This document shows positions 4,508 through 28,431 of a DNA stretch of 64,000 bases, piece by piece. The DNA comes from Rebecca billardiae RCC1528 (taxonomy: Eukaryota; Protista; Haptophyta): NCBI GenBank assembly GCA_965240325.2, contig OZ251232.1:1240001-1304000 (forward strand), written 5' to 3'. Position 1 is the stretch's first letter. Each line of letters opens with the position of its first letter. Made by a program: the position numbers and the translations under genes. The notes beneath the pieces were generated by a model. The model did not search any database. It was not told where the DNA came from and was given only the letters and a program-made list of their open reading frames with translations.

Positions 4508-5395
4508 CTATGAGAAGAGGCGCTGGTCCGCCGGGAAATTGACCACGTCACGGAACCAGCTCCGCGCGTGCGTGAAGTAGACTATAGGGCGCGGGCTCCC
4601 CGATCCATTCGCCAATCCGCGGTGCACCACCCGGTAGTCGAAGACCAGCACGTCGCCAACGTCGAGCTCGGGCGCGACGCTAGGGACGGCCGTGAGCCCG
4701 CCATCCGCGTCGGCGAGGATGGTGCCGTCCGCGATGAGGCCGAGGGCGTCCGAGGCGGCGAAGAGGTCGTCGGCCCCGCAAGCGTACTCCGCCGCCGCGA
4801 GCGCCGCGCTGACCGCGCCCTCGCGCCGTTGGGTGTGCGTCCCCGGCCAGAGCTCCGTTGGGCCGCGCGACGCGCACACGCGCTCAACGGGCACGAAGAC
4901 GGTGGCGCAGTGCGGCGGGCATATGACGGTGCCAGGCTCGTCGACGCCGAAGAGCTGCCCACCGTCGACGTGCGGGCGCTGCGCTTCCGCGCCGGGCATC
5001 GACACCACCGCGCCGCTGAAGAGGTGAGCCGGATTGGGCCCGAGGAGTGCATCGAGCAATGGCGACCATGGTGCGCGCTCGGTGAGCCGCGGCTCACGCA
5101 GCGGCACGGGCGCCACGCCCTCGCGCAGCTGCATATCGTAGCGCCCCTGCGAGCGGTGGCAGATCTCGAAGAATTCGAACGGACGGTCGGCCGAGCTACC
5201 CCTCGCCTCGATGCGCGCGAAGCACGCGCGCATGTTCGCCATGACCGCCCCGCCGAGCGCGCCCACGATGGCTGGCCGCACGGCGCCGCGCAGGACGACT
5301 GCGCCGTGAGCACGGAAGCGCTCGCAAGCTGCGCTCACCGTCGCCGGGCGCAGCCGACTGGCGGCCTCGCGATCGCTCACGCTCACGTCGAGCAT
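4508..5395 (-). CDS. Phytanoyl-CoA dioxygenase (PhyH)-family 2OG-Fe(II) oxygenase
   Basis: FRAHGAVVLRGA start, HxD in QRPHVDG, GPTELWPGTH, GDVLVFDYRVVHRGLAN with distal His and downstream Arg. Confidence 0.85.
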   Translation of the reverse strand: MLDVSVSDREAASRLRPATVSAACERFRAHGAVVLRGAVRPAIVGALGGAVMANMRACFARIEARGSSADRPFEFFEICHRSQGRYDMQLREGVAPVPLREPRLTERAPWSPLLDALLGPNPAHLFSGAVVSMPGAEAQRPHVDGGQLFGVDEPGTVICPPHCATVFVPVERVCASRGPTELWPGTHTQRREGAVSAALAAAEYACGADDLFAASDALGLIADGTILADADGGLTAVPSVAPELDVGDVLVFDYRVVHRGLANGSGSPRPIVYFTHARSWFRDVVNFPADQRLFS

Positions 5396-5893
5396 GTCTC
5401 GACGGGCACGCCGTCACCGACGCGCGCACTCTGTAGTAGCGGTCTTTGACGCAATCATCATCAGTCGTCCAGACATTTTCAGCCCAGCGCCGGCCGATAC
5501 TGCACGTAAGTAGATAGTAGTCATACATTACTACAAAAGTACGACACAGTAGTCGACGATACTGTACCAAAGGAGTGAAAGGACCATCAGATACAAGTAC
5601 CACGCTGCCCCGGGCGTGGCAGCAGCGAGCACCTCCTGCTGACTCCATGCCCGTGCTGATGCCACCGCGAGCGCCCGAAGGACCTGCGTCGAGGAGTGCC
5701 GCGCTACTCCGTCACGTAGGCCTTGACCACATCATCAGTTGTGATGGTCAGTTACCCTGGCAACCAGAGGACCATCAAAGAGGTGCTGCCTCGGCCTGCC
5801 TCGGCGGCCCCTGTGTCTCAGGCTCGGACAGGCCACAGGGACTTGGCTCGGACGCATGCCGGGCTCTGGCTTGCAGGCAGCTGTCCTAGCACG

Positions 5894-5966
5894 TGGGGGA
5901 GAGGCCGCGCGGAGAGAGGCGCGCGCTCGAGTCCTGGCTGGAGAGGGCGCGCTGCTAGGGCGTGGC
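5894..5966 (+). pseudogene. Degenerate partial copy of a Sel1-gene segment (~2886-2958)
   Basis: TGGGGGAGAGGCCGCGCGGAGAGAGGCGCGCGCTCGAGTCCTGGCTGGAGAGGGCGCGC aligns by eye with TGGGGGAGAGGCCGCGCGCGGAGAGGCGCGCGCTCGAGGCGTGGCTGGAGAGGACGCGC; the copy has TAG where the gene has GAG. Confidence 0.6.
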
Positions 5967-6128
5967 GTACTGTAGCCGGCGAGACGTGCATTTCTACGAC
6001 GAGCAATCCCAGCCATCCGCGTGCGTTTCTGAAGAGCGCTCCCCGCATGGCTTCCCCAGTGGTGAGCAGTGCCGGAATTTCGCGCGTGCGAGGAAAGAAT
6101 AACGGGAAAAAGACACTCGACTCGAGCG

Positions 6129-7259
6129 ATGGTGGCCGGGGCCATTCACCGGGCGGTGCTCTTCGTACTGCTGCACGCGACGTGCGCAGGGCGCGCACGC
6201 GCGGCGGAGCCAACGGCGCCTGGGCATGACGCTTCGCAGTGTGCTGCCATCCTCCGCGCCTTCCAGCGCGACGACGTGATGCACGTGTCCCGCTGCCCGA
6301 CCGAGTCGTGGCTGGCGACGATTGCGGCGCGCAGCGCGCGCGGCTGCGCCGTCGAGCACGCGCGTGTGCTGGTGGTGGGCGGGAACAAGGGCTATGACTG
6401 CGCCGGCTGGACGCGCATGTTCAGCGCGGCCGAGCCCGCCGCTGCGCTCTCGGCCAAGAGCTGGCGTGCCGCGCTCGGGGCCGTGAACGCGCGGATGCTC
6501 GACCGCGGCATGCATGCGTGTGGCAAGTGCATGCAGTGCGGCGAGGACTACCCGCTGCCGCCGGCGGGCGCGCCGCTCTCGCGCGTGCAGCCGCCGCGCG
6601 TCGAGTGCGTCGAGGCGCTGCCGGTCAATGCGGCCATGCTCCAGGGCGCGCGCGCCGCCGACCACTGGCGCGGCAGCGGGCTACGGATCCTTCACGCCGC
6701 GATGACGCGCCTTCGCCCCGGCGAGACCAACGTGACGGTGACGTTCCCCGCGGTGGACGCGACGCTCGCCGGGATCGAGCACGTGCACCAGCTCAAGCGC
6801 AAGAAGGGCGCCACCGTCCAAGTCCGCGCCATGACCGTGGACCAGCTCGTCTTTGGCAGCGGCGGCGGCGGCGGCGCCCGCGTGCCGGTGGCGGGCGATT
6901 CGGAGAGCGTCGCCGCGGCGGTCCAGCTGCCAACGGTGCTCACGGTGGACACGGAGGGGAGCGACGCGCTGGTGCTGCAGGGGGCGAACCGCACGCTCGG
7001 CACGGGGCAGGTCGCGCTCGTCCAGTTCGAGTACCACCGCATCGGCCGGTGGCAGTACCGGAAGCTCTCTGCGTCGATCGCGCTGCTGGACCAGCATGGG
7101 TACGACTGCTACTGGGCGGGCGCACGGCGGACGTACCGGATCACGCGGTGCTGGGCGAAGGAGTACGAGTTCCACATGTGGTCGAACGTGGTGTGCGCGC
7201 ACCGCAGGCACACGTGCTGGCTCGGCGCGCTCGAGGAGGCGCACGCGCCGCTGCCATAG
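6129..7259 (+). CDS. FkbM-family SAM-dependent methyltransferase with signal peptide/anchor
   Basis: VVGGNKGYD motif I, ECVEALPVN, VRAMTVDQL, LTVDTEGSDALVLQGA, LVQFEY, GYDCY; hydrophobic N-terminus. Confidence 0.85.
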   Translation: MVAGAIHRAVLFVLLHATCAGRARAAEPTAPGHDASQCAAILRAFQRDDVMHVSRCPTESWLATIAARSARGCAVEHARVLVVGGNKGYDCAGWTRMFSAAEPAAALSAKSWRAALGAVNARMLDRGMHACGKCMQCGEDYPLPPAGAPLSRVQPPRVECVEALPVNAAMLQGARAADHWRGSGLRILHAAMTRLRPGETNVTVTFPAVDATLAGIEHVHQLKRKKGATVQVRAMTVDQLVFGSGGGGGARVPVAGDSESVAAAVQLPTVLTVDTEGSDALVLQGANRTLGTGQVALVQFEYHRIGRWQYRKLSASIALLDQHGYDCYWAGARRTYRITRCWAKEYEFHMWSNVVCAHRRHTCWLGALEEAHAPLP

Positions 7260-11618: not shown

Positions 11619-14600
11619 TGCCGCCGGGGCGGCCGCTGCCGCTGTTGTTGAAGCGCACGGCGCGATTGCGGCCGCGGCCGGGGCAGCACGAGGCGAGCTT
11701 CTGCGCGAGGTCGTCGCACGCGTCGCGCACGTCAAAGCTGGGCAGCACGATCGGCCGGCCCGAGCGCCGCCGCGCGAAGAGGAACGCGCCGGCGCCGGCC
11801 GCGCCGAGCAGCAGCAGCACGAGCAGCGAGATGAAGAAGATGGCCCAGCCGTTGAGCGACTTCCGACCGACCGAGGTGAACTGTCCGGGGAAGCCGTAGT
11901 CCGGGAGCATGGCGCACGGCTGCTTGCACTCCTGCCAGATGCCGCGCGACTCGTCCGTGAAGCACCACGGCCGCTTCCACCCGTCCTCCGTGCACCCCAT
12001 GTACGTGCGGCCCTTGTACGTGAACGCGGGCTCGCAGCGCACGTCGTCGACGGTGCACATGCGCTCCTCGCCCGGCGGAGGCACCTGCGAGCGGTCCCAC
12101 TCGTTCGGCTCCGTCTCCGAGCACTTCACTGCGCGCGCGCGAGGGGGGGCGCGGGGAGCGCGCGGGCGGGTGAGCGCGCGAGGGCCAGCGGCGCAGCCCG
12201 CCGCGCCTCGCGCGCGCGCCTCGCGCGTGCTGCGCGCCGTGTGCGCGCGCGCACAGTCAAAGCCGTGACCGGTGAGGTCGCGCGCCTTCACGCCCCACCC
12301 GTCGTTCATGCGCCAATACGCGGCGAGGCGCTTGGGCACGTTCTTCGACGCGCCGCCGGGGCGCAGCTCGAGCGGGAGCAGCGCGAGGTGCGTCGTGGTG
12401 ATCTGCGCGACCGTGCGCGCCTCGCCCCAGATGGCCACCTCGTCGAGCGCGCCGTGGAAAGTGCGGTGCGGGTACCGGCGCCACCCACCGAGCTGCACGC
12501 CCGCCGCGAGCGCGGGGTCGGCGTTCTTGCCGCTCGGCGGCGCCTGCGGGCGCAGCCGGCCCTTGACGGGGACGGAGGAGACGATCGCGCCGTCGAGCAC
12601 GACCTCGACGCGCGAGATCGCGTACACCACCGCGAGCTGCCGCCAGGACTCGTCCGGGTCGATGTAAACGCCCGTGCGCACGCGCCCCTCCGGCAGCATG
12701 GCCGCCTGCTCGTGCCCGTAGAGCGGCCCGACCATGTATGGCTGGTCGGAGCCCGGCGCGGTCTCGACCTTCTCGCGGTTGGCGCGCTCGACCTGCTTCC
12801 GCTCCGCCTCGCGCAGCTTGTTCAGCTTCGCCGCGTCGAGCTCCACCCCCTCGAACGCCCACGTCACCTCGCCGTCGCGCTCAAGCACTATCTGAAACGC
12901 CTGCTCGTCCAGCAGGAGCGCCTCCTCCGTGCCCGCGCGCCCGCCGTTCGAGCCGTCGGAGCGGAGCCACATCTGCACGGTGAGGCCGGCGGGCTTGCCG
13001 CCCACCTGCGCCTTGATGTCGCGCGTCGACTCGCAGCCCGACAGGTAGTTCCCCGAGAGGCGCAGCGCGTACCCCAGCGAGACCAGCCCGTTGGCAGAGT
13101 CGTCGGTGAGTGCGGTCGAGCGCGTCCACGCGCCTGCGGGCACGGGGATCGCCGCGCCGCCGCCGCCGCGCAGCGGCCCGCCGATGATGCCGTCGTTGCC
13201 CTTGCCGCTCTCGTCGAAGAGGCGGCCGCCGTGGCCGGTGTCCATCGAGTAGGAGAGGACGAGGTCCTTCGACTGCGGCGGCGCAGGCAGGGCGCGGGCG
13301 CGGGCGTGGGCGGCGCGCAGCAAGCACGGCAGGTGGGTGAGCGAGCGCGCGCGCGCCGGGGGCGGCGGCACGCGCGCGGGCTGCCTCCCTCGGCGCGGCG
13401 CCGCGCGCGGCGCGGCGGTGCGCGCACGTCGGACGGCAGCGCGTCGGGCAGCCGCTCGTGCCCGGTGAAGCGCGTCCACCGGTTGTTGGGCGGCTCGACT
13501 GCCGCGGTGTACGTCGCTGCGACCTCCTCCGCGCTGCGCTTGGTCGACCACATGCGGATCTCGTCGACCTCGCCGCACAGCTCGTGGTCGAGCTCGCCGC
13601 TCGGCGAGACGGCGCCGCCGATGACGAGCGGCGTGTCGCGCCGTGCGCTGATGTGGCCCTGCGTCGCAGCGGGCGGCGGCGGCAGCGGCAGCGGCGCGGC
13701 GCGGCGCGCGTCACGTCAGGCGGCGCGGGCGGCGCGCCTGCGTGCGTGGCGCGCGCCCGGGGCGCGGCGGGGCGCGGCGCGGGCGGGCGGCGGCGCGCAC
13801 CGCGCCGTGCTTGACGTCGAGCGCGGGCGCGCCGTTCATCATCAGCATCGCCTTCTCGTTGTCCACCGCGAACGCCACGTGCACCCACTGGCCCACAGGC
13901 ACGTCGTACTCCGCTTCCTTGTTGCCTGGCTTGAGATCGACACCCGGAGCGGCGACCGTGGGCGCGCCCGGGCCGCGGCGGCGGTTGTTGGTGATCGCCG
14001 CGGCCTCCTCGGTCGGCGTGGCGGTGGTCTGCGTGTTGTGCTTCTGGTTGCCCACCTTGAGGTACAGCTCGCCGCCGCCCTCGATGCCGAACTCGAACTC
14101 GCCCTCGCGAGATGCAATCACGCGGTGCCGGCCATAAGCTTCGTCCGGCGTCTCGTGTCCGGCGGCCGTGTTCGTCTCCTGCAGCGCGCGGCGGTGCTCG
14201 CCGTCCTCCTCGGCGAGGTGGTCGTCGAGGCGCTCGGCCGCGTCGATCGGCTCCTTCTTCGACGAGAGCCGCAGCCACAGCTCCATCGTCAGCCCGCCGC
14301 CGGCGTCGATCGATCCCGAGCCGGGCACGGCGATGTGCGAGGCGCCGCTCTCGAACGAGCAGCGGCCGAGGGCGAGTCCGTACCCGACGCCGAAGCGGCC
14401 GTCGAAGGAGCGCGCGATGGGCGAGGTGGCGCGCGCCCAGACGGCGCCGTTCTGGTTGAGCGCGAGGTGCCGCCCGTTGCCCGAGCGGTCCATCGTCATG
14501 TCGCCCAGCCCCTCGTCCAGCGGCCAGTAGCCCGCGAGCTCCGTCCCAATCGAGTGCCTCGCCTTGTCGAGCGCGCGCGACTCCTCGTCTGAGTCGAGGA

Positions 14601-17091
14601 TCAGCCGGCCGAGGAAGCGCGCGCGGATGTCCTCGATCGAGCGCGAGACGCTCCACAGGCGCACCTCGTGCAGCGCGCCCTTGAGCGGCCGGTCGCCCAT
14701 CCGGTCGTTGCCCAGGATCAGCGGCGGCTCGATGCCGTGCGTCTGCGGCCCGCCGCCGCCCGAGCCGCGCGGCACGTCCGAGCGCATCAGCTCGACGCCG
14801 TTCACGGCGAGGAGCACCGAGTTGGTGCGCAGGTTGGCGGAGAGCGCGACGTGGTACCACACGCCGGTCTCGGGCGTGAAGGCCGGCGTGCTGCGCACCA
14901 TCACCATCGGCGTGCCCGTCAGCGTGAACACCAGCACGGGCGCGCCGTGCTCCTCGTGGTCGGGCGCGGAGAGCGCCAGCTCAAACGCGCCGCCGCCGGT
15001 CGCGAGCACCTGCCCCTCGCGGTCCTTGGTGTGGCCGTTGTACACGAACCAGCACTCGAAGGTGAAGGCGCGGTCGCGCTTGAGGTCGAGCGCGCGCTCG
15101 CCCGTGACCGCGGGCACCCACGCGCCGTGGTCCCGCCCGGTGAACGCCAGCTCGAAGCGCTCGGGCTTCGGGTCGCGCGCCTGGCCCATCGCGAGTGACA
15201 TCGGTGACGTGCCGAGTCGCCATTCGTACTCGGAGCCCACGACGGTCGCGCCGCGCACCTCGTCGGGCTCGTCGCGCGAGCCGACGCCGTGCGCGGCGTA
15301 CGCGGTGCGCCCGCGGCCCTCGTCGAAGCTGTACGCCGCGAGCAGCCCGTCGAGCCGGTCGTCGTGCTCGAACGTCGGCGAGACCGCGTCGAGCATCATC
15401 GCGGCGAGCTCCTCTGCCGAGCGCGCCTTTGCCCAGACGCGCACCTCGTCCAGCACGCCCGCGTACGCCGAGTCGGCGTTGTGCAGCGTGCCGCCGATCT
15501 CGAGCGGGCCCTCGGTGCGCAGCAGGTCGCCGCCGTGCGCCTCCTTGTCCTGCCCGCACTGCACCCCGTCGATGAACGCGTACGCGCCGTGCTTGTCGAA
15601 GGTGAGCGCGACGTGCTGCCACCGGCCGCGCGTGAGCTTGCATGACGGGATCGGGATCTGCCCGTTCACGCCGCTCGAGCCGCGCGCGTTGCTGCGCCCG
15701 GCGAGGTAGTACCAGAGGACCATCTCGCCGGCGGAGTAGCCGAGCGCGTACGAGCCCTCCTTGTACAGCACCGTCAGCACGCGCGAGCTCTGGTGGTTCT
15801 TGTCGTGCGGCTGCAGCCACAGCTCGAAGGTGCCGTGCGCCTTGAGCTGCAGCTTGGAGCCCGAGTCGGACGCGATCACGTGCGTGCCCGCGTGCCCGCC
15901 GGTGAGCGCGAGCTCGGTGCCGCCGAGCGTGCGCGCGAGCGGGACGCGCTCGGCGCGCGAGCCGCCCGACTCCTCCAGCGTCGTCGCCGCCACCTTGATC
16001 AGGTGCCCCGGCTGCTCCGCCTTGGCCTTGTTCTTGTCCTTGTCGTAGCCGGAGTCGTCGTCCGAGAAGGAGTTGTAAGGAGTCAGGTGCAGGTCGGGCG
16101 GCTCGTCGAAGGCGGCGTTGTCGCGCACCTGCTTGGGCGGCTCGAGGACCGAGCGCGCGACCACGTTCTTCACCTCGCCGTTCTCGTCCTCCGCGTCCGC
16201 CGCCGTCACCGGCCAGTACGCGAAGAGCCCGTGCTTCCAAACGTCGTCCGGGTGGAACGACTGCAGCATGTTGCGCACGATCTCGCGCTGCGAGCGGCCG
16301 GTCATCCACACGCGGATGTCGTCCACCGCGCCGTGGAAGGTCTCGGAGGGCGTGTCCGGGTCGCCGCCGATCGTCAGGTCGCCCTCGTCCTCGATCCGCC
16401 CGGTCACCGTACGCCACACGACGCGGCGGCCGTCCGCGTACACGCCGAGGTGCGCGCCGTCGTATGCGAGCGCGACGTGCGTCCACGCCGAGAGCTCGAG
16501 CTCCTCGGGCGCGACGACGGCCTTGCTGAAGACGCCCTGGGCGAGCTGGCCGTCCACCTCGTCGATGAAGCGCAGGCCGTCCGCCGAGTACACCAGCTGC
16601 GCGTGCGGGCCGTGCACGCCGAAGCGCACGCTCGCGTGCGTCGTGAGCGCCCACTGCGTGTTCGAGCGCCGCTTGTTCGCGCCCATCGGCTTGAGCCACA
16701 TCTCGAAGGTGAAGCCGGGGCCGAGGGTGAAGGGCTCGTCCGTCATCAGCATCTCGCCGTCCCCGCCGTGGAACTCGAACGAGTGCGGCGAGGTGTCGTC
16801 GCCGTCGAGCAGCCCGACCGGCTCGCACGGCGCCCACGAGCCGGTGAACGCGCCCGCCGGGCCGGTCGAGCACCACGAGTCGCCGATCTGCGAGTCCTCG
16901 TACGTGCAGGTGTGGTACCGGGTCATCTCGAACTCGCGCCGCTTCAGCGCGTACAGGTCCGACTCCGGCATGTATGTGAACGGCAGCGTGCACTCGCCGA
17001 CAAGCGCCTGGCCCGACTTGGCATCCTCGCCCGCGCGCGCGGCGCGCGGCGCGGCGGCGGCGAGCAGCGCGAGCAGCGCGACGACGGGCAT
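11341..17091 (-). CDS. Type-I membrane protein: signal peptide, FN2, five LamG/ConA-like domains, FN2, TM, Gly/Asp-rich tail; exons 17091-13801, 13658-13428, 13272-12255, 12128-11341
   Basis: Five repeats of (F/L)T(F/M/V)(E/Q)xW...W.H/QVA...GA(V/L)DE(I/V)R(V/L)W; FN2-like CTLPFTY..YHTCT..WCST..WAPC and CEPAFTYKGRTYMGCT..PWCFT..WQEC; TM WAIFFISLLVLLLLGAAGAGAFLF followed by RRR. Three GT-AG introns (142, 155, 126 bp) join in frame. Confidence 0.85.
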
Positions 17092-17404
17092 GGAGGGGCG
17101 CGAAGGCGCCGACGCGGACCACATGTGCTCCCGGCTGTGCGGGGGGAGGCGGCGATGCGAACGGCCACCCGCGAGGCGCACAACGAAGGACACCGCCGTC
17201 GTCGTCGTCGGCAGCTGCTTGCGCTTCGTCTCGGCTGTATCTGCGCCGTTGAGGGGGGAAGAGGCCCGCCCTCAATCGCGGCGGGCTGGGCAGTTCGGCC
17301 CCGGACTTCCGTCGGGCAGTTGGGATAGCTATGGGATCTGCGGTCCGGGAGCGGGATCCGTAATCCTCAAGCTCCTCACGTCCAGGCTGGACGCCACCGC
17401 CAAC

Positions 17405-18880
17405 TCACACGGTGACAGTACTGTCGTCTGCTGTCCGCTCGAGCAGCAGCTTGCCACCCTCTGTGATGCGCCATCCATCCCTCGCCATCGTGGCGCCGAC
17501 CTCGGTGCCCTCGAGGGCACTCCAAAAGGCCGCGCTGTCCCGCTGGTCGTGGCAGATGAGCGCCACACCAAGTCCGACGCCAGCGCCGTGTTTGGCGTGG
17601 CTCGCTGCCGCCTTGCTTCCACCCGCGCCCGGCGCGGCCCAGTGCGCGCACGCCTCGGCGATGCGCACGGCGGCGCGGCGCGCACACGCCGGGCCGCAGA
17701 GCTCGGCGTCAAGGAACTCGCCATGCGGGCTGGGCTCGTGCGGCTCCTCCGCGCCCTCCTGCCGCAAGAGCAGGCGCATGCGCGAGCACGCCGCCGCGCA
17801 CGCGCGCGCGTCGCACGCGGCCGCGTGCTGGGCAGCCTGGCCGCAGCCCCAGCACTGGCGCTCCCACTGCAGGTTGGGGCTCGCGGACAGTCGGCGCGGC
17901 GGCGGCTCGTCGCGCAGATCGAGGCGCAGCTCGAACGGCTCCGCGCACGGCATGCTCAGCGAGGGGCCCGCCTCCCCCGCCTCTGCGAGCTCGGCCCCCG
18001 ACGAGCCAGCATCGGCCGCCGCGCCGCTTCGGGCGCGCTTCTTCAGACCACCGCCGGCCGGCCGGCGCGCACGCGCGTGCAGCGCGCTCGTGTGCCACGG
18101 CAGGACGTGGTGGCCCCGCTGTGCGCGGCCACTGAGCACGGCCGCGTCGAGCTCGGCCACGCTCCACCGTGCACGCGCGTCCTTCGGCGCGAGGTACCGC
18201 CTCGCCAGGAGCAGCTCGAACTGGAAGGCCGGCCGCCCCGACGCGGCGCTGCCAGCGCCGGCGCCGGCGCCGGTGCCGCCGTCAGCACGGCGCGCGCGCA
18301 CGACGCCCGCAGACACGAACGGGCCAAACTGATTCCTGCCCACGGCGACGGCGCGCGCGGCGGCGTGGTCGCGGCCGTGGCTCGTCGCGCCCGAAGCAGC
18401 GCCCGAGTCCGCGGGCCCGCAGACCATCAGCTCGTGCACCTCGTCCTTGTGCCACGTTTTGCCACCCTCACCCTCGAGCTCCCAGCCCCGGCCGGCGCTG
18501 AGCTGCGCGCGCAGGCCTGAGAGGAACGCGGGCGACCCGGGCGCCTGCGGATCGGCGCAGCATGGTATCCACGCCTCGCCCTCGCGGGCCTCGGACGCCG
18601 CGTCGACGACCGCAGGCTCCGGCGCACTCTCCACCTCGAACTGCATCAACGCGGTGGCGAGAGCGCGCGCGCTCGGAGCGGGCACCGCGCGCGCGTCCGC
18701 CATGTCGACAGAGACCCACGTGCCAGCCCACGCGATGTGGGCACGGAGCTCCCAGCATCCGCCGTTGGGGGCGCCCTTGTCAGGAACCCAGCGCTTCTCG
18801 GGGGACTCGAGCTTGATCGTGCCGCCCCAGACGAAGAGGCTGTCGCGCCACGACATGGAACGGACTTGACGAGCCGCCAT
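17405..18880 (-). CDS. Hypothetical protein with Cys-rich C-terminal region
   Basis: Plausible composition (SLFVWGG, WAGTWVS, GRNQFGPFVSAG, ARRYL) from ATG 18880; CWGC..C..C..C cluster; divergent from the PLC gene. Confidence 0.6.
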   Translation of the reverse strand: MAARQVRSMSWRDSLFVWGGTIKLESPEKRWVPDKGAPNGGCWELRAHIAWAGTWVSVDMADARAVPAPSARALATALMQFEVESAPEPAVVDAASEAREGEAWIPCCADPQAPGSPAFLSGLRAQLSAGRGWELEGEGGKTWHKDEVHELMVCGPADSGAASGATSHGRDHAAARAVAVGRNQFGPFVSAGVVRARRADGGTGAGAGAGSAASGRPAFQFELLLARRYLAPKDARARWSVAELDAAVLSGRAQRGHHVLPWHTSALHARARRPAGGGLKKRARSGAAADAGSSGAELAEAGEAGPSLSMPCAEPFELRLDLRDEPPPRRLSASPNLQWERQCWGCGQAAQHAAACDARACAAACSRMRLLLRQEGAEEPHEPSPHGEFLDAELCGPACARRAAVRIAEACAHWAAPGAGGSKAAASHAKHGAGVGLGVALICHDQRDSAAFWSALEGTEVGATMARDGWRITEGGKLLLERTADDSTVTV

Positions 18881-19060
18881 GGTACTGGATAGGGGTCCGG
18901 AAAGTGTCTCACCGGAAAGGTGGCGGTGCCCAAGAGAGCGTCCAAAATCCAACAAAATGGCCTATTGATGAGGCCAAAATCTTACCCAACTCTCAATACA
19001 ATATGCGATGAGTGGCGACAACATCTCCCGCGCCCCCGCCCCTGCCGCTGGGCCTCGCCC

Positions 19061-22000
19061 ATGGAGCCCCAAGCCCGTGAGGCTGAGGGCGCGGACAGCA
19101 GCGGGCGCATACCGGCGGGCGGCGGCGGCGCGCGGGACGCCTCCACCGATGGCGTAGCCGCCAATAAGGACATGTGGCCGCTGCGCCGGACCTCGGCCAA
19201 CTCAGACAGCAGCTCGCGCGCGCCGCCACGGCCGCGGCGGCCGTGTGCGGCCGTGATCGACGCGCCGGTCGACACGCAGCTCTGGCTGCTGATCGTGGGC
19301 GTGGACGCGCTGACGATGCTCGCGTACGCGTGCATCCTCGCCCTGCGCGGTGGCGGCCTCTCCGTCCGCTTCTACGCCACCTTGATCGGCATCGGCGCGC
19401 TCACGCTCGGCGCGCTCGGCGTGAACGCCGTGCACGGCGAGTCTGTGACCGACCTGCTCGCGGCGACGGCGGTGGGCGTGGCGGTGACGGCGGCGGTGGC
19501 GTACGAGCAGCTGAGCGCGTTCTTCCGCGCCGCCGACCCGCGCGCCGCCGCCGCCGCGAGCTGGGGCCTCCCCGCCGAGCTCGTCACGTTCGCCCCACTG
19601 GTCGTGCAGGCGTGCGTGCAGGCGTGCGCGTGCGCGCTCGCGTATCGCGCGCGCGGCCTGTTCGGCTGGCGCGTGTTCGAGCTGTTCGGCGCGGACCTGA
19701 CGCGGAAGCAGCAGCACGAGGCGTGGCTCCGGCTGCGCACGCTCTGCACGCTCGACCTCGCGCTGCTCCCACTGCAGCTCTTCGCGCTCGGCGCGCTGCT
19801 CGGCGCGGCGTGGCTGTGGCCGGTGGCGGTGGCGGCGGCGGCGCTCTCGGCGGCGACGACGCTCGGCCTGTTCGGCGGCGTGCTCGCGCACGCGCGCGCG
19901 CGGGCACGGCGCGCGCTGTGGCTCACGCTCGCGCTCACGCCGTGGTCGCCGCTCCTCCTCGCCTTCTCCGCGGTGCAGCGCGTGTTCGCCGAGCGCGGCG
20001 GCGCGGCTGCGGCGAGTGACGTCAGCGCGTCCGCGGCGGCCGCGTCCGGCGCGGCGACGCGCGAGGCGGCGCTCGACGGGCAGTGGGAGCCGGCGGTGCT
20101 GGTGACGCTGCTCTCGCTCGTGCTCGTGCGCGCCGCGCTCTTCCACGCGCTGCGCACCAGCGCGCCGCTCTTCGACGCGCAGCGCGGCGCGCCGCCCGGC
20201 GGGCGCGCGCGCGCGCCGCGCGATCTCCCGCCCGAGATTGCAGCGGCGTGCAGCGAGGATGAGCGGGCGCAGCTGCGGCAGCTGCTGCGCGGGGCGCACG
20301 TGCGGCTGCGGCAGGCGCGGCGCGTGCGCGCCGAGGCGCAGCGCGGCGGCGCCCTCGAGCGCGGCCACCACGGCCTCGACAGCAGCACGAGCGGCCGGCA
20401 CGGCGGCGGCGGCGGCGGCGGCGGCGACGGCGGCGGCGGCGGCGGCGGCTCGCCGCTGCGCCGCGAGACGTCGAGCGCCACGGACATCTTCGAGTCCGGC
20501 GGCGCGGCGGCGGCGGCTCGGCCGGCGCACGTGGCGCACGCCTCGTCGAGCAGCCTCGACGCCGCCGCGCCGCCGCAGCCGCCGCAGCCGCCGCTCCGCT
20601 TCGAGCGCGCGCGCGGCGCGCGCCGCTTCGTGCAGCTCGCGCCCGACTGTGGGACCATGCGTTGGTCTTGGGCTGATTACGTGCTGCTGGAAGAGCTGGT
20701 GGGGCTGTACGCGGTGGGCGGGGCGGGCGGCGGGCCGGGCGCGGGGCCGCCCGCGGGCGAGGGCCCCGCGCACGCCGCGCCGCGCCGCGCCGACAGCGCC
20801 TCCTCCGCCTCCGCCTCCGCGTCCGCGCGCGCCGTCGGCGCGGACGGCGGCGTCGGCGCAGAGGAAGGCCTGGGTGCCGATGACGGCGCTCGCTCGCTCG
20901 TGCTCGTGTACGGCGGCGGGCGCGCGCGGCGCGCGGTGGAGCTGGAGTTCGACAGCGCGGAGCAGCGCGCCGTGTGGCACTCCGCGCTCGCGCTCCTCCT
21001 CGAGCGCGACGGCGGCGCCTCCGCCATCGACGCTGAGTTGAAAGAACACCTCAGGCTGCTGTTCAGAGCTGTCGACCGCGACGCCACGGGCTCGATCTCG
21101 GCGGCGGAGATGCGGCCGTTTCTGCAGCTGCTGAACTGGGAGCCGAGCCGGCGGGTGCTGCGCGCGCTGGTGGCCGAGCTCGACGAGGACGGCTCGGGCG
21201 ACCTCTCCTTCGCCGAGTGCGTCCGCCTCCTCGGCCGCGTGCAGCGCACCGACACCTCGCGCCCACAGCACCCGGCCTCGAGTGTTTACAGGCGGTACGC
21301 GCGCCACTCGGAGGGACTCATGACCTTCGCCGACTTCGCCGCGTTCTGGGGCGCGGAGCAGGGCGGCGGGGCGGTGCCGCCGCCGATGCTCGACGCGTGG
21401 GAGCGCCTCGCCACCGCGGACACGGGCGGCGGCTACGTCGACGCCGAGCGCTTCGGACGGCTGCTCCATGACCCATCCAACTGCGCGTGTGGCGCGGACG
21501 CGCAGCCCGAGCCATCCGATTCGGAGCCGCTGTCGCACTACTTGATCGCGTCGAGCCACAACACGTACCTGACGGGGGACCAGCTGCGGAGCGCGTCGAC
21601 GGCGGAGATGTACGAGCGCGCGCTGCTCCTCGGCTGCCGCTGCGTCGAGCTGGACGTGCACGACGGCGCGGACGGCCGACCCGAGCTCAAGCACGGAAAC
21701 ACGCTCACGTCCCGGCTTAGGCTGGACGACTGCCTGCGCAGCATCAGGGCGGCCGCGTTCGTGCGCACGTCGCTGCCGCTGATCCTGTCGCTCGAGGTGC
21801 ACTGCTCGGTGCGCCAGCAGGCGGCGCTCGCCGCCGCGCTGCGCGCGCACTTTGGCGACGCGCTGCTGCTGCCGCAGCGCACGGCCGCGAGCGCGCGCGC
21901 CCTCCCGACTCTACGCGCGCTGCGGAACAAGGTCGTGGTCAAGGCGAAGCTGCGGCCGGTGGACTCGGCGCCGCCGGCGGACGCGGCCGGCGGCGGGGCG

Positions 22001-25000
22001 GGGGAGAGCGTGGACGCGGCGGTGGCGGGCGCGACGGCGGGCGCGGGCGGTGGCGCAGACGCCGACGCCGACGCGCGCCGCGCCGTGCCGCGCCGCGCGA
22101 GCAGCAGCGGCGGCCTCGGCAGCGGCGGCAGCGTCAGCGCCCGCGGCGGCGGCAGCAGCGGCGGCGGCGGCAGCGGCGGCGGCAGCGGCGGCGGCTCGGC
22201 CGGCGCGAGCGACAGCGGGCACGAGCCGCCGCACCCGCACCCGCTGCCCAAGCACGGCTCGAGCTCGAGCCTGCGAGAGGGCAGCGGGCGCGTCGCCCGC
22301 ACCTCCCGCCGCGCGCGCTGCTCGCTCCCCGCCGCCGCCGCCCGCCTCGGTCGGCTGTCGTTCGGCGCGTCCGCGTCCGCCGCGGGCGCGGGCGCGGGCG
22401 GCGGCGGCGGGAGCGGCGGCGGCGGCGGAGGCGGCCCGGACGCGCCGAGGGACAAGGTGGCGCCGGAGCTCGTCGCCGTCACCTTCCTTGCGGGCAAGCG
22501 CTCCAAGGCGGTCGGCAACTTCTCGGAACCTTCGTACGCGGTCGGCTCGTTCAACGAGCAGCTGGCTGAGGCGCTCATCCGGACTGACCCGGACCTGTGG
22601 ATGGCGCACTGCAACCACCAGCTGGCGCGCGTGTACCCGCGCGCGAGCCGCGTGGACTCGAGCAACTTCAGGCCGACGCCGCTCTGGGACTCGGGCGCGC
22701 AGCTCGTCGCGCTCAACTACCAGACGTGTGACGAGGGCATGCAGATTCAGCGCGGCCTGTTTCGAGCGCACGGCGGCGCGGGCTTCGTTCTCAAGCCGGC
22801 CTTCATGCGCGCGCACGGGCCCGCGGGCTCGGCGAGCGCGCGGCGCGAGCTCGAGCGCGCGGCGGCGCCCGAGCCGCCCGCGCAGCCGCCGCGCCGGGCC
22901 CCGATGCAGCGCCCGACGCCGCCCCGAAGCTCGACTGCCAGCGCGGGCAGTGGCCGTCGCTCGACTGCGCTTGGCCGCAGGCGCTCGGCCGCGTCGGGCG
23001 GCGCCGACGGCCACGCGCCGCCGAGGTCGGCGCCGCGCACGCTCCGCGCGGCGGTGCATGCGGCGGTGCTCACGCTCCGCCTGCCTCCGCGCGCGCCGTC
23101 GCTCGCGCCGCCGCGCGCGGAGGCCGAGCCGACGGCGGACGCGGCGGCGACGGCCGAAGCCCCCATCGACATTGAGCGCGGTCCCTCGGGTGTGCGCGGC
23201 GGCGCGAGCCGTGTCGAGACGGGCCCGGCGGCGACGCCGTCGCAGCTCACGCGCGTGACGCTGACCATCCTCACGGGGCGGCACCTGCCCAAGCCTGGCG
23301 AGGAGCGCGCGGCGGCTGAGGTGTGGGTCCAGCCGCACTCGCCGCTGCACAGGCCGACGCAGCCGTGCGCCAACGCCGTGTCCTCGCCCGCCGTGCGCGT
23401 GAGCGTGCACGGCGGGCGGCTTGCCGGCGTCACCGCGGAGACGGAGACTCCGTTCGAGTCGTGTGCGCACGGCGGCGTGTTCGAGACCTCCGCGGTGCCG
23501 CACAACGGGCTCGACCCGCTGTGGGGGCAGGCGTGCACCGTGATCGCCTCCGACCCCGATCTTGCAGTCCTGCGCATCGCCGTGCTCGACGGCGGCGCGC
23601 GCGGCGCCGAGCGCGGCACCGTTTCCCGAAGCCCGTCAAAGGGCCGCGTGGCCGAGCCGAGCGCCGCCGCCGAGAGCGCGAGCCCGACGGGGCGTGCGGC
23701 GCGCGCCGGGCTCGGCGGCGAGCTGATGGCTTGGGAGGCGTTCCCTCTCAGCTCGCTCCGCGCAGGGTACGGCACCGTTGCGCTGCGCGACCGCAGCGGG
23801 CAGCGCGTGCGCTTTGCGCAGCTGCTCGTGCATGTAGCGCGCTCGGAGCACTCGGTGCGCGGCGCGGCGCGGCGCGGCGCGCGCCCAACCCCGCGCCGCG
23901 CGCGCCCCAACCCGGCCGCTCACCGCCGCGCCGCGCCGCGCGCGCGCGTGCGGCGCGCAGCTGCTGCCCCGCGCCGCCGACGCAGGCGACTCGTCCCCGC
24001 GGCCGCCGCTGCAGCCAGCGCCGGACGTCGGCTGGAGCCTTGCGCACCGACTTGACCGGCTGCGGGTGCGGGTCGCGCGCGCGCGCCGCGAGACGAGGGC
24101 GCGCGCGCGCCCGCCGCGCCGCTGCGCGCGAGCTCACCCGGCCGCGCGCGCGACCCGCCCTTGGCGCCGCGCCGCCGCCCCTCCTTGGCGCAGACGACCG
24201 GCTCGGCGGACTCGGCGCTCAGGCTGTGGCAGCGAGCGGTGCGCTCGCGCGAGGCGGAGGCGGCTGCGGCCGCCGCGCGCCGCAGCCGGCACTCGCGCAC
24301 CTCAAGCGACTCGATCACGCCCGGCTGCACCGGCGCGAGCCCGCGGCTCCGGGGTCCGGGCGCGCGGCAGAGCTCGCCGGACTCGAGCGCCGCCGAGACG
24401 CCGATCGCCGAGCGGCTGGACGACTCGCTCAGCCGGTGGCACGCCGCGGAGCGCGCGCTCGGCCCTGCGGCCGTCCTTGCGTCGTCTTGCGGGCACTCCT
24501 CGTCCGGCCTCGCGTCATCCGCCGGCGCCGCCGCTCCTGCGTCCGAGGCCGGAGGAGCAGCAGCCCCAGCTGGCACCGAGGCGGCCGCGTGCTTCGAGGC
24601 CGCGCCCAGCTCGAGCGCCGCGCACGCGCCCGGCGGCGCTTACTCGACTTACTCCTCCACGGAGGAGCGCGGGCGCGCGGCGGCGGCGGCGCCCTCGGCC
24701 GGAGCGCCGTCGACGGCGGACGAACTCGCCCGGCTCCTGGCGGCGCCGAGCGCGAGCATGACGGACGTGCTCCCCTTGCCCGCCGCCGCGCCGAGCACGG
24801 GCGCGGCCGACATGCGCTCGCTCGTCCGGAGCGCGTGCGCCGCCTCTCGGCTGCAGCAGGCGGCGGAGCGCGCGCGCGAGCAGCGCGGGAGGCTTGGCCA
24901 GCTCCGCCCTCACACGGGCGAGCTGCGCCGCGCGCGCTCGAGCGGCGTGGCGCCGGCCCAGCGGAGTGCGGTGCTGGACGCGCCGGCGGCCGAGCCGCCG

Positions 25001-25471
25001 GCGTCGGCGGATGCACCGGCGTCCGCACCCTTCGCCCACGCTGCCGCGCCCGCGCCCGCGCCCGCCGTGGACGCGCCGACAACGGCCAGCGGCGGCGCTG
25101 GCGCCGCGCCAGCCCTGGCCTCGTGGCTGCAGCGCTTCGCGGTGGTGGCCGAGGCCGTGAGCGCGCTGACCGGGCTGCAGACGGGCCTGCTGGCCGGCGC
25201 GCCGGCCGCGCGCGAGCACGACGGTTTCGACGGCGTCGTGCACGGCGGTGGCGGCGGTGGCGGCGCCGGCTCGTCGCAGCCCGCGCCGCGCCGCAGTCAG
25301 GCCATCGTGCCTGCCGAAAGCAGCTCGCCCGCGGACGCGGCCCTGGGTCCGACGGCCGGCGCGTATGATGGCTATGGCGGGCTGCATGGCGCGTGGCAGG
25401 GCGAGGTTGCTTCGCCGCCTGCGCGTCTTCAGCTGCCACCGGAGGCGCCGACGCCGCCACTCTCCGCTTGA
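19061..25471 (+). CDS. PLC: Phosphoinositide phospholipase C fused to an N-terminal ~8-TM domain (TM-PH-EF-X-Y-C2 + low-complexity tail); exons 19061-23854, 23961-24065, 24194-25471
   Basis: X box SSHNTYLTGDQL, CRCVELDVHDG, KHGNTLTS, LILSLEVHCS; Y box RVYPRASRVDSSNF, QLVALNYQT, GFVLKP; EF hands DRDATGSIS and DEDGSGDLS; C2 NGLDPLW..LRAGY. The 3' exons are inferred from GTGCG..CAG sites. Confidence 0.88.
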
Positions 25472-25602
25472 GCTGGGCAGCCTTGTGTTCGCCTTGTGAC
25501 TATGTGTGGTCCGCCATGCTGATTGATGATGGCGACTCAGGTGAGTAGCTTCCAAGTATCCGGCCATCAGGACCGCCCAACTTGAAGGCGGCTTCGGGTA
25601 CG

Positions 25603-25754
25603 ATGACCTCGCGCGCCGGGGCGCGGGGGCAGGCGCCAGCGGCGGAGTCGGAGCGGCAGCCGCGGTCGCAGGGCTCGCCCGCCCCGCGCATCTCCGTCTC
25701 GGCCCATCTGCCCCGCAAGCTCGCGCGCATGGTCACCTTCCGCGACCTGTGGCG

Positions 25755-25788
<34 letters not shown>

Positions 25789-28431
25789 TGGTCGCAGCCG
25801 TCCGAGGCACGCCTCGACGACGAGCAGTTCAAGTCGGGCGTGCGCGAGATCCTGCTGTACCTGCTCTTCATGTGCCTCTTCTCCTTCGTCGCGATGGCTG
25901 GCAACCGGCTCGTGCAGTACCGCCTGCAGGCGAGGCTGGATGCTCACATCTTTGGCGCGGCCGCCTCCGACCCAGAGGAGGCGGGCAGCTTCGCCGACGT
26001 CGCGACGGTGGACGAGATGTGGTCGTGGCTCGACGAGCAGTTCGTCGAGCGGATCTGGGGCGACGGCCTCGCCGAGCACGAGGCCTCCGAGGGCGAGCGC
26101 GCCTTCATTCTGCACGACTCGAACCTCTTGCTGGGCTCGGTGCGGCTGCGGCAGCAGCGCGTGCGCGCGGTGTCGGCGACCGAGTGCCGCGTGCCGCGCG
26201 CGCTGCGCACGCACGTGCCGCGCTGCCACTTCGACCTGGCGCCGGACACGCGCCTCGACGAGCCGACCACGCCCGCCGGGCTGCTCACCACGCTCACGCT
26301 CAACCCGCTCGCCGCGCGCACAGAGATCCGCGCCGAGCTGCGGCGGCTGCAGCGGCGCGGCTGGGTGGATGCGGCGACGCGGCTCGTGCGGCTCGACCTG
26401 ACGCTGTACAACGCGAACTACGACATGTTCGTCTCGGTGGTCGTCCAGTTCGCCATCGAGGCCTCCGGCGGCGTGTGGCCCACGCGCTGGCTCCGGCCGA
26501 TGTGGCTGCGGCGCAGCTTGATGCTCGTGCGCGGCACGGCAGAGTTCCAGCCGGACGCGGGCGAGGTGCTGCTGCTGAGCTGCGAGTTCGGGTGCATCGT
26601 GATGATCCTGTACTACTCGGCGCGCACGCTGGTGGAGATCCGGCGCGACGGCATCGTGCCCTACTTCTCGCATGCGTGGTCCATCATCCACGTCGCGAAC
26701 AGCCTGCTCTTCTGGGCGGCGTACACGCTGCGCGTGCGCGCGCTGATCGCGGTCCACCACGTCGTCAACCTCAACCCCGGCCCGAGCGAGTTTGTCGACT
26801 TCGAGTCGCTCGGCGCGATGCAGTACGGCGTGCACTACCTGAACGCGGTGAACCTGGTGCTGGTGTACCTCAAGCTCTTCAAGTACCTCCGCCTCTCCAC
26901 GCGCCTCTCCCTCCTCGTCATGACCCTCGAGCGCGCGTCGACCGACCTCGCGACGTTCACCGCCGTGTTCTCACTGATTGTCTTCGCCTTCACGCTCGCC
27001 TTCCACGCGACGTTTGGCTCGGTGCTGCGGCAGTACGCGGACGTGCCGAGCACGTTCCTCACGCTGATGAAGATGGCGTTCGGCGACTTCGACTACACCT
27101 CGATCGCGCAGGCCAACCACGTCCTCGCGCCCATCCTCTTCCTCTCGTACATGGTGGCGATGATCCTGATCCTGATCAACGTCTTCCTCGCGATTGTAAA
27201 CGAGTCGTACATTGCGGTGCGGCGGCACGTGGCGCAGGAGGACGAGTTCATCATCCGGATGCGGCACGGGCTGGCGAAGCGGGTCGAGCGCGTCAAGGCG
27301 ACGCGCGGCTACCGCTTCGTCGCGTCCAACCTCGCCGTCGTCGCGGGCGTCACCAAGAAGTCCAAGCAGGCGCTGCAGGGCGCGTCGCGCAAGGGCTCGA
27401 TCGTCGCGCACGCGCTCGCCGCGCAGGCGCTCAAGAAGCGGCGGGACGGCACGCTGCGCGCGGACACGAACGGCGACGGCCGGCTCGACGCGGCGGAGAT
27501 CGACGCGTACCTCGGCGACGAGATCGCCGAGGGCGCCGCCGCCGAGCTCGTGCGCACGCTCGACCGCGACGGCGACGGCTCCCTCTCAGAGGATGAGCTG
27601 AGGGCCGCGGCCGCGCGCGCGAGCGCGCGCGGCCTGAGCCCTGACGCGCTCGCGCTCGGCTCGCTCAGGCCGCCTGACGTGGCGTCGGACGGCTCGGGGC
27701 GGGTGTCGGGCGCGTCGGACGCGCGGGCGAGCGCCGCGGCGGTCGACGAGGTGGTGACGCGCCTCGACCGGCTCGAGAGGCAGCAGGAGCAGCTGCTGCA
27801 CCTGCTCGCGCAGATCGTGAGCGCGGAGATGCGAGGCGCGCGGCGCAATCGGCGCGGCAGCGCGAACGGCGGCGGCAGCGGCGGAGGCTCGTTCTCGCGC
27901 AGTGGCAGCCGGCACAGGCTGGGGGCCGACGACTCGCCGCCGTCACAATCGCCGGGCCGTGCGCGGACGACCGGCCCGACGCTGCCGCGGCGCGTCTCGG
28001 CGCCGACGACCCACGGCACGCACGCGCCGACACCGGCTGCCGGCGCGCAGCCCGCGGGCGCGGGCGCGAGCTCTGCGCCGAATGCGTTGCGCTCCGGCCT
28101 GAGCGAAAGCAGCCACTCGCCTCTCAAGGCGGCCCATCGGGCGGGTGCTGCGGCCGGCGGCCCGCGGCGCGGCGGCCCCGGAGTGCCTCCCCCTGATGCG
28201 GCGACCCACGCGCACGCGCGATCGCAACACGACGCGCTGGCTGCCACAGGCCAGTCAGGGCCTGGTGCACGCTCGAGCGCGGCCGTGGCGGCACTCGCGG
28301 GGTTCTCGCTGCCGCGCCGCTCGAGCCAGCCTGGCGTCAGCACTGGCGAGGGCTCCGACGCACCGCGGCGTGCACCGGCGCCCGCTGCCGAGGGAGCAGT
28401 GTCGGCAGCGGCGCCGCGAGTGCCCTCTTGA
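25603..28431 (+). CDS. PKD2: Polycystin-2 (PKD2/TRPP)-like cation channel with two C-terminal EF hands and a coiled coil
   Basis: S1 EILLYLLFMCLFSF, TOP domain NLLLGSVRLRQQRV..WVDAATRLV..YNANYDMF, YFSHAWSIIH, KLFKYL, pore FLTLMKMAFGDFDY, S6 ILINVFLAIVNESY, EF loops DTNGDGRLDAAE and DRDGDGSLSEDE. Start may extend to 25516. Confidence 0.93.

Follow-up and report, generated by a model that had tools for sequence, protein, structure and literature searches.

A probable integral-membrane phosphoinositide phospholipase C in a haptophyte and its relatives in marine algae and protists

The stretch of DNA analysed here, hereafter the window, comprises 64,000 nucleotides from the haptophyte Rebecca billardiae RCC1528 (contig OZ251232.1, positions 1,240,001 to 1,304,000 of the forward strand); coordinates without a locus name are positions within it. 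Positions 19061-24055 of the + strand probably form a single gene whose product is an integral-membrane phosphoinositide phospholipase C (PI-PLC), belonging to a family of marine algae and protists that we call TM-PLC, for transmembrane (TM) phospholipase C (PLC). The predicted protein begins with an N-terminus of about 70 residues, followed by an eight-helix module bearing an FGWR motif and then by a PLC-delta-like core made of PH-like, EF-hand, X, Y and C2 parts. This TM-PLC layout recurs in nine or more further loci of algal or marine origin. The features of the locus are as follows (aa, amino acids; GC3, G+C content at third codon positions; UTR, untranslated region).

18800-19060 (+): 5' intergenic or promoter region and 5' UTR; GC dip, codon periodicity absent
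19061-24055 (+): TM-PLC coding frame, ATG to first in-frame stop, 1664 codons; GC3 and improbability of the stop-free run
19061-19279 (+): N-terminal tail, aa 1-73, Arg/Lys-rich, probably cytosolic; translation and positive-inside rule applied by eye
19280-20152 (+): eight-helix membrane module, aa 74-364; hydropathy, AlphaFold with the family alignment, alignment A2, phmmer
19661-19696 (+): FGWR hallmark motif FGWRVFELFGAD, aa 201-212, in the basic helix 4-5 loop
20225-21007 (+): PH-like segment, aa 389-649, with low-complexity inserts; family-conserved core, putative label
21041-21217 (+): EF-hand pair, loops DRDATGSISAAE and DEDGSGDLSFAE; EF-hand_7 6.4e-7, EF-hand_6 1.9e-5
21521-21949 (+): PI-PLC X half of the catalytic barrel; PF00388, alignment to PLC-gamma
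21950-22525 (+): X-Y linker, long, Gly/Ser/Ala-rich; translation, GC3 0.92-1.0
22526-22801 (+): PI-PLC Y half; PF00387 1.2e-29, alignment to PLC-gamma
23228-23854 (+): C2 domain with inserts; weak Pfam C2, alignment to the C2 region of a relative, P0168
23855-25471 (+): candidate 3' region beyond C2; periodicity lost, then regained in the same frame

One coding frame for a membrane module and a PLC core

The open reading frame (ORF) that holds the gene spans 18920-24055 on the + strand, 1711 codons without a stop, and its first plausible ATG (19061, in the context CCCATGG) leaves 1664 codons to the stop. At the local composition (A 0.10, T 0.12) a stop-free run of 1664 codons has a chance of about 1e-8. 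Stops are rare at such a composition, and codon-position composition is stronger evidence for a single unit than this run. In the TM-PLC frame GC3 stays at 0.88-1.0, unbroken from about 19190 to 23850 and thus across membrane module, linkers and PLC core alike, and the G+C content of second codon positions is 0.44-0.9 over the same span. The sole GC dip near the gene (0.57-0.60 at 18800-19100) lies 5' of the ATG, and inside the gene GC is 0.73-0.86. Codon-position composition and GC revealed neither an intergenic-like region nor a frame-changing intron between the membrane part and the PLC part. Judged from the DNA, the two parts are confirmed as one coding unit. A first-pass annotation of the window had placed about eight membrane segments and a PLC core in one uninterrupted frame, and this holds: frame and GC3 are unbroken and AlphaFold predicts eight helices.

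The same annotation ended the feature at 23854, which is not a stop; the frame continues to an in-frame TGA at 24053-24055. Codon periodicity is lost over 23855-24070, within which this TGA lies, and is back in the same + frame from 24075 to about 25300, a stretch with no ATG near its start and no Pfam match. The region 23855-25471 has two candidate readings: an in-frame intron leading into a C-terminal exon that would be disordered, or a UTR after which another gene begins. An ortholog-like record, P0006, carries a tail of about 600 aa C-terminal to its C2 domain. P0006 is the closest relative of the catalytic part of the window protein; it is a Joint Genome Institute (JGI) record of 61% GC, probably transcript-derived, and is cut at its 5' end within the EF region.

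The PLC core that the first-pass annotation had seen beside the membrane domain was borne out as a PH-like/EF/X/Y/C2 series, in which the EF, X and Y parts score above the Pfam cut-offs. PI-PLC-X (PF00388) is matched at aa 821-963 (4e-49, 166.4 bits, cut-off 23.1) and PI-PLC-Y (PF00387) at aa 1156-1247 (1.2e-29, 103.4 bits, cut-off 28.8). EF-hand_7 is matched before X at 30.1 bits (cut-off 30), and both EF loops are canonical 12-residue Ca2+ loops. A sequence search of the PDB returned PLC-gamma2 (5e-69) and PLC-delta1 (7e-60).

In PLC-delta1 the residues that matter are two catalytic His, four Ca2+ ligands (Asn, Glu, Asp, Glu) and the substrate-binding Lys, Lys, Ser, Arg and Tyr. When the window protein was aligned to PLC-gamma, SSHNTY (His, Asn), VELD (Glu, Asp), KHGNT (His) and SLEVH (Glu) were all found to be kept, as were VKAK (Lys, Lys), GSFNE (Ser), ARVYP (Arg, Tyr) and RVDSSN. 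The X half holds His833, Asn834, Glu863, Asp865, His878, Glu912, Lys961 and Lys963, and the Y half Ser1163, Arg1190, Tyr1192 and the RVDSSN motif. The catalytic His (SSHNTY, KHGNT) and Ca2+ ligands (ELD, SLE) that had been picked out at first pass are thus all among the motifs found in this alignment. The catalytic core is intact and apparently that of an active enzyme.

On either side of the catalytic barrel the domains were traced mostly by alignment. The PH-like core, RRFVQLAPDCGTMRWSW.DYVLL, is followed by a C-terminal helix, AVWHSALALLLER. Its family-wide form is RRF.QL..D...LRWSW..Y.LL.E, where R, Q, D, RWSW, Y, L and E are invariant. At its C-terminal end the segment can be aligned with PLC-gamma, starting at chain residue 89-99, a part of PLC-gamma that we take to be PH-domain territory. 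The C2 region aligns at E 2e-22 to that of P0168, which carries a Pfam C2 domain, and is 57-62% conserved relative to P0006 in the alignable parts.

The eight helices of the membrane module are placed at aa 74-95, 104-124, 129-148, 173-195, 228-251, 252-276, 285-305 and 344-364. In a Kyte-Doolittle scan with a cut-off of 1.5, seven of the eight pass and aa 285-305 stays under. AlphaFold, run on the family alignment, predicts eight long helices including aa 285-305 (predicted local distance difference test score, pLDDT, 79; predicted template-modelling score 0.74); this model was used instead of the single-sequence one, which was poor for the membrane part (pLDDT 50).

The FGW motif that the first-pass annotation had noticed between the fourth and fifth membrane segments is present there and is the hallmark of the module; in the form FGWR..F..FG.D it is the most conserved feature of the TM-PLC family. 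In alignment A2 (17 sequences) a helix-3 Glu, a helix-4 Gln and the string F-G-W-R-x-F-x-x-x-G are invariant. All of them are kept in the window protein, the first two as Glu127 (GESVTDLL, start of helix 3) and Gln187. Conserved polar residues within the helices are an Asp in helix 1 besides this Glu and Gln, and a conserved segment connects helix 8 to the PH-like domain across the family. Arg and Lys counts of the loops, made by eye, fit a topology in which the N-terminus, the FGWR loop, the helix 6-7 loop and the C-terminus are all inside. By the positive-inside rule the module would have both of its ends in the cytosol, which would place the FGWR loop on the cytosolic face and the PLC core on the same side.

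The TM-PLC family in other loci

The first-pass annotation treated the protein as a one-off fusion. It belongs instead to a conserved family, one member of which is an annotated but unnamed protein of Diacronema lutheri. This protein, KFE25_012739 (P0002; 1852 aa, UniRef 'Phosphoinositide phospholipase C'), was reached by a search with the EF-X region and was the only one of its 120 matches with an N-terminal cluster of hydrophobic segments. It is annotated as a single exon. Pairwise BLAST aligned it in collinear order with the window protein over the membrane part with its FGWR motif, the PH-like core, X, Y and C2, identity falling from 58% in X to 44% in Y and 25% in the membrane part.

When the membrane part by itself was run exhaustively with phmmer against 1.84 billion representative proteins, only 16 matches came back at E<=0.001, all of 141-462 aa and with E-values from 6e-13 to 4.5e-6. 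They had the appearance of stand-alone proteins, which closer inspection did not bear out. A member of one of these relative clusters, P0151 (695 aa), extends into PH and EF, and its 413-kb contig (L003) holds PI-PLC-X and C2 pieces downstream. Downstream of P0132 and P0139, on the strand that encodes them, their contigs carry PLC Y/C2 or X/Y/C2. Of the four contigs fetched, only that of P0133 (L004) has no PLC part downstream. A search seeded with P0151 led to P0168, a Tara metagenome protein of 1177 aa (L015 303-3836), which combines in one ORF a membrane module 33% identical to that of the window (E 3e-20) with Pfam X, Y and C2 domains. Scanning metagenomes for the FGWR and helix-3 ENT peptide patterns added nine further loci. 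A full-length word-indexed homology search gave no matches, a blank that is uninformative since the query words were Ala/Gly-rich.

The layout is collinear on one strand or in one frame in the window, L001, L003, L005, L006, L013, L015, L016 and L017. L010 and L012 show part of it, up to PH or PH-EF, where their contigs stop. The TM domain is followed by the PLC on the same strand in L003, L005, L006, L013, L016 and L017, with both in a single frame in L006 and L013. Among the relatives, single frames stay open for 1184, 1409 and 2179 codons in DNA of 59-65% GC, lengths that exclude chance open frames at such GC contents. Wherever downstream DNA suffices, PLC domains follow the membrane module, except in L004 and L007.

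Shortened forms were seen at three loci. In L007 (341-1384, P0167) helices 1-7 are fused straight to the end of C2, in L012 (112-1027) helices 1-4 are joined to PH-EF, and in L004 (8001-9203) the PLC part is absent. Splice variants, deletion variants or chimeric assemblies could account for these forms.

A quick maximum-likelihood tree of the catalytic domain, built from eight TM-PLCs and 29 other PLCs, put the TM-PLCs on one side of a single branch (Shimodaira-Hasegawa-like approximate likelihood ratio test, 85), and none of 500 label shuffles was as clustered. The tree fits a single origin of the fusion, without amounting to proof. Two members are degenerate at the active site: P0168 reads ASHKTY (SHK for SHN) and SLNLLC (SLN for SLE), and L005 (8975-9940) reads FASSRSY (SSR for SHN) and TLNVFC (TLN for SLE). 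By their sequences both look like PRIP-like dead enzymes that keep the membrane module and the layout.

Nature and possible role of the membrane module

Foldseek, which the first-pass annotation had proposed as a check, found nothing in the PDB at E<=0.001 with the eight-helix membrane model. An Atlas structure search returned frizzled as its best match (template-modelling score 0.45, root-mean-square deviation, rmsd, 5.7). VIA-align, run wide, matched either half to nothing more specific than four-helix bundles (Z about 11), under the caution level of about 13 that the tool sets for helical bundles; rhodopsins reached Z 8-9 with an rmsd of about 5. A PDB profile search with the membrane alignment gave nothing credible, and the window module had no Pfam match even at E<=10. 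In these structure searches no transporter, rhodopsin, G protein-coupled receptor (GPCR) or voltage-sensor fold was recognised in the module.

Three readings of the module are not supported. A GPCR or other seven-helix identity was set aside given the eight helices, the lack of a Foldseek match in the PDB at E<=0.001 and the poor superpositions of frizzled and rhodopsin. Helix 4 (ELVTFAPLVVQACVQACACALAY) is without any basic residue and so has no Arg ladder, which speaks against a voltage sensor. The two halves are not significantly similar in an hhalign profile-profile comparison, which speaks against an internal 4+4 duplication.

A tentative explanation of the module is that it acts as a sensor or receptor for a ligand, an ion, a lipid or the state of the membrane and gates the PLC allosterically, so that a one-component receptor-PLC, comparable to GPCR-PIPK or the voltage-sensing phosphatases, would bypass G proteins. 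The conserved polar and charged residues in helices 1, 3 and 4, the strictly conserved juxtamembrane motif and the conserved segment leading from helix 8 to the PH-like domain argue for such a role, as does the fact that the catalytically degenerate paralogues still keep the module; a plain anchor would not need eight conserved helices. The searches described above speak against it, with no known sensor, receptor or transporter fold in the Foldseek comparison, only generic bundles below the caution level in VIA-align, a best Atlas score of 0.45 and no arginine ladder in helix 4.

A second explanation, to be held just as tentatively, is that the module is a diverged DUF7789 (PF25044) domain. 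The enzyme would then reside in the Golgi or endomembranes, and the fusion would hint at a phosphoinositide role for this orphan family. DUF7789 clusters were the top ESM feature neighbours of two independent queries, the window module (0.90) and P0168 (0.85), which are to be read as leads only. In hmmscan DUF7789 was the only Pfam family to match more than one member (three of 17, best E 0.0027), and the L006 module matched it at E 2.6e-4 with 21.4 bits. On the other side, every match is under the gathering cut-off of 25 bits, the window module has none at E<=10, and DUF7789 is absent from the Atlas structure-search listing. The 129-position DUF7789 model matches the first half in some relatives and the second half in others, yet the halves are dissimilar by hhalign. 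The first-pass annotation had likened the module to UPF0658, which may be the same family as DUF7789; that equation is an unconfirmed assumption and not the result of a tool.

It is very improbable that the PLC part is a pseudo-enzyme, a PRIP-like scaffold that would bind phosphoinositides, inositol trisphosphate (IP3) or Ca2+ and not hydrolyse. P0168 and L005 have indeed lost catalytic residues, but the window protein keeps the catalytic His, the four Ca2+ ligands and the substrate Lys, Lys, Ser, Arg and Tyr, and the catalytic residues are likewise intact in P0002, L003, L006 and L013. Least credible of all is that two genes, for a small membrane protein and a soluble PLC, share an open frame by chance, or that an internal promoter yields a soluble PLC as the main product: stops are rare in DNA of 78% GC, long open frames are common on both strands of the window and the 250-aa linker from helix 8 to the EF hands is rich in low complexity, but the stop-free run is improbable (about 1e-8), periodicity and GC never fall between the parts, the same order recurs in single ORFs at 59-65% GC and in one intronless annotated gene of D. 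lutheri, and the linker holds the family-conserved PH-like core.

The reading we prefer is that of one gene for an integral-membrane PI-PLC. Such a TM-PLC would be permanently resident in one membrane, not recruited to it, with both ends of its module in the cytosol and with the FGWR loop and the PLC core facing the cytosolic leaflet. It would hydrolyse phosphatidylinositol 4,5-bisphosphate or a related phosphoinositide to diacylglycerol (DAG) and an inositol phosphate, in a Ca2+-dependent manner through its catalytic Ca2+ site and EF hands. The membrane module would fix the site of PLC activity and probably also modulates it, because the polar residues within the membrane and the connector from helix 8 to PH are conserved. 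If the protein is a real and active TM-PLC, the balance between a module that is mainly an anchor or localiser and one that is a regulatory sensor is roughly even.

Several points weigh against the reading of one integral-membrane PI-PLC gene. The transcript structure is deduced from DNA, and the 3' end beyond 23854 is provisional. The membrane module of the window is divergent, with 22-33% identity to its relatives, and has lost the near-invariant Asn and Thr of ENT and the Lys of LK.D. The PH label has neither a Pfam match nor a PDB-profile match, the latter searched with the PH-like alignment, and the Pfam C2 match is sub-threshold (13.7 bits, cut-off 22, E 0.076). Finally, L004 is without a PLC part and L007 has an internal deletion, either of which may reflect faulty assembly or a genuine short form.

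Known systems and gene neighbourhood

To our knowledge, the known eukaryotic PI-PLCs are soluble enzymes, and we know of no N-terminal membrane module in those of animals, plants, fungi or apicomplexans. Their regulation is largely one of recruitment to membranes, through PH or C2 domains, G proteins, kinases or acylation. The window protein resembles the PLC-delta type in the order of EF hands, X/Y barrel and C2 and in its conserved catalytic, Ca2+ and substrate residues. It differs from that type in its N-terminal eight-helix module of about 290 aa, in the low-complexity inserts of the PH-like segment, X-Y linker and C2, and in having two fully canonical EF-hand loops. D. lutheri P0002 shares the TM(8)-PH-EF-X-Y-C2 order, the FGWR motif and a single exon; unlike the window protein it belongs to another paralogue or orthologue group, and its PH-to-X region is much longer.

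Other polytopic membrane domains are known in fusion to phosphoinositide enzymes. In voltage-sensing phosphatases (Ci-VSP/TPTE) a four-helix voltage sensor with an S4 arginine ladder is joined to a PTEN-like phosphatase. They resemble the window protein as membrane modules fused to a phosphoinositide enzyme on the cytosolic leaflet, whereas the window protein has no arginine ladder and its enzyme is a PLC. In the GPCR-PIPK proteins of oomycetes, Dictyostelium (RpkA), haptophytes and others, a seven-helix GPCR lies N-terminal to a phosphatidylinositol phosphate (PIP) kinase (PMC5784254). Here too a polytopic membrane domain precedes a phosphoinositide-metabolising enzyme, and haptophytes are among the organisms concerned; the window protein differs in having eight helices, no GPCR-like fold match and a PLC in place of the PIP kinase.

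Among proteins that share only one part of the architecture, those with DUF7789 are polytopic eukaryotic membrane proteins of about 230-390 aa, the nearest to the window module by ESM features and weak hmmscan scores; unlike it they are stand-alone, and the scores are below the Pfam cut-off. PRIPs resemble P0168 and L005 in having lost catalytic residues while keeping the domain layout, but they have no membrane domain, and the window protein is catalytically intact.

The literature searched held no description of a transmembrane or integral-membrane PI-PLC layout, an absence that is not proof, and no paper on Diacronema lutheri together with phospholipase C. TM-PLC is not mentioned in the GPCR-PIPK survey (PMC5784254), in an oomycete IP3 review or in a ciliate kinome paper. 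What is new is the recognition and description of the TM-PLC family; the sequences were already present, unnamed, in public databases.

With a complete PLC core welded to an eight-helix domain, the enzyme would always be at the membrane, unlike recruited PI-PLCs, and control would therefore have to be exerted by Ca2+, by the membrane domain itself or through the place where that domain resides. The TM-PLC family offers a testable model of how PLC is regulated in haptophyte-like marine algae, a group of ecological importance whose signalling is little studied, and it includes active and apparently inactive paralogues for comparison. It would be a natural parallel to GPCR-PIPK and the voltage-sensing phosphatases, and may be the first functional hint for orphan DUF7789-like membrane proteins.

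A bolder proposal, which we consider rather unlikely, is that the FGWR module is a new membrane sensor, responsive to ligand, ion or bilayer state, that directly switches the attached PLC. If it were true, haptophyte-like algae would possess a one-component pathway from receptor to IP3 and DAG in which neither G proteins nor tyrosine kinases take part. Its regulators would be the dead-enzyme paralogues, and the adjacent Ca2+ channels (PKD2-like in the window, an IP3 receptor in L003) would belong to the same circuit.

The TM-PLC gene of the window is followed directly, at 25582-28431 (+), by a gene for a polycystin/PKD2-type cation channel (Polycystin_dom and EF hand; PKD_channel 2.6e-40). Upstream, at 13711-17193 (-), lies a large ORF with three Laminin_G_3 matches (1.5e-65), a LamG-repeat gene. 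In the related ENA contigs L003 (1-1487 and 16409-18088) and L004 (233-1840 and 14946-16130) the TM-PLC gene has an inositol-1-phosphate synthase gene upstream and an IP3-receptor-like gene (Ins145_P3_rec/MIR) downstream, and a RabGAP-TBC gene also stands between these flanking genes at both loci. The surroundings in L003 and L004 may represent an inositol/Ca2+ signalling neighbourhood. No synteny was found between the window and L001 or L003, and because the L003 and L004 loci are not syntenic with the window, the Ca2+-channel and inositol neighbours are only a suggestive coincidence. In L016 the TM-PLC locus is adjoined, at 4787-6676 (-), by a gene for PTHB1/BBS9, a BBSome subunit, which suggests that the organism of origin is ciliated or flagellated.

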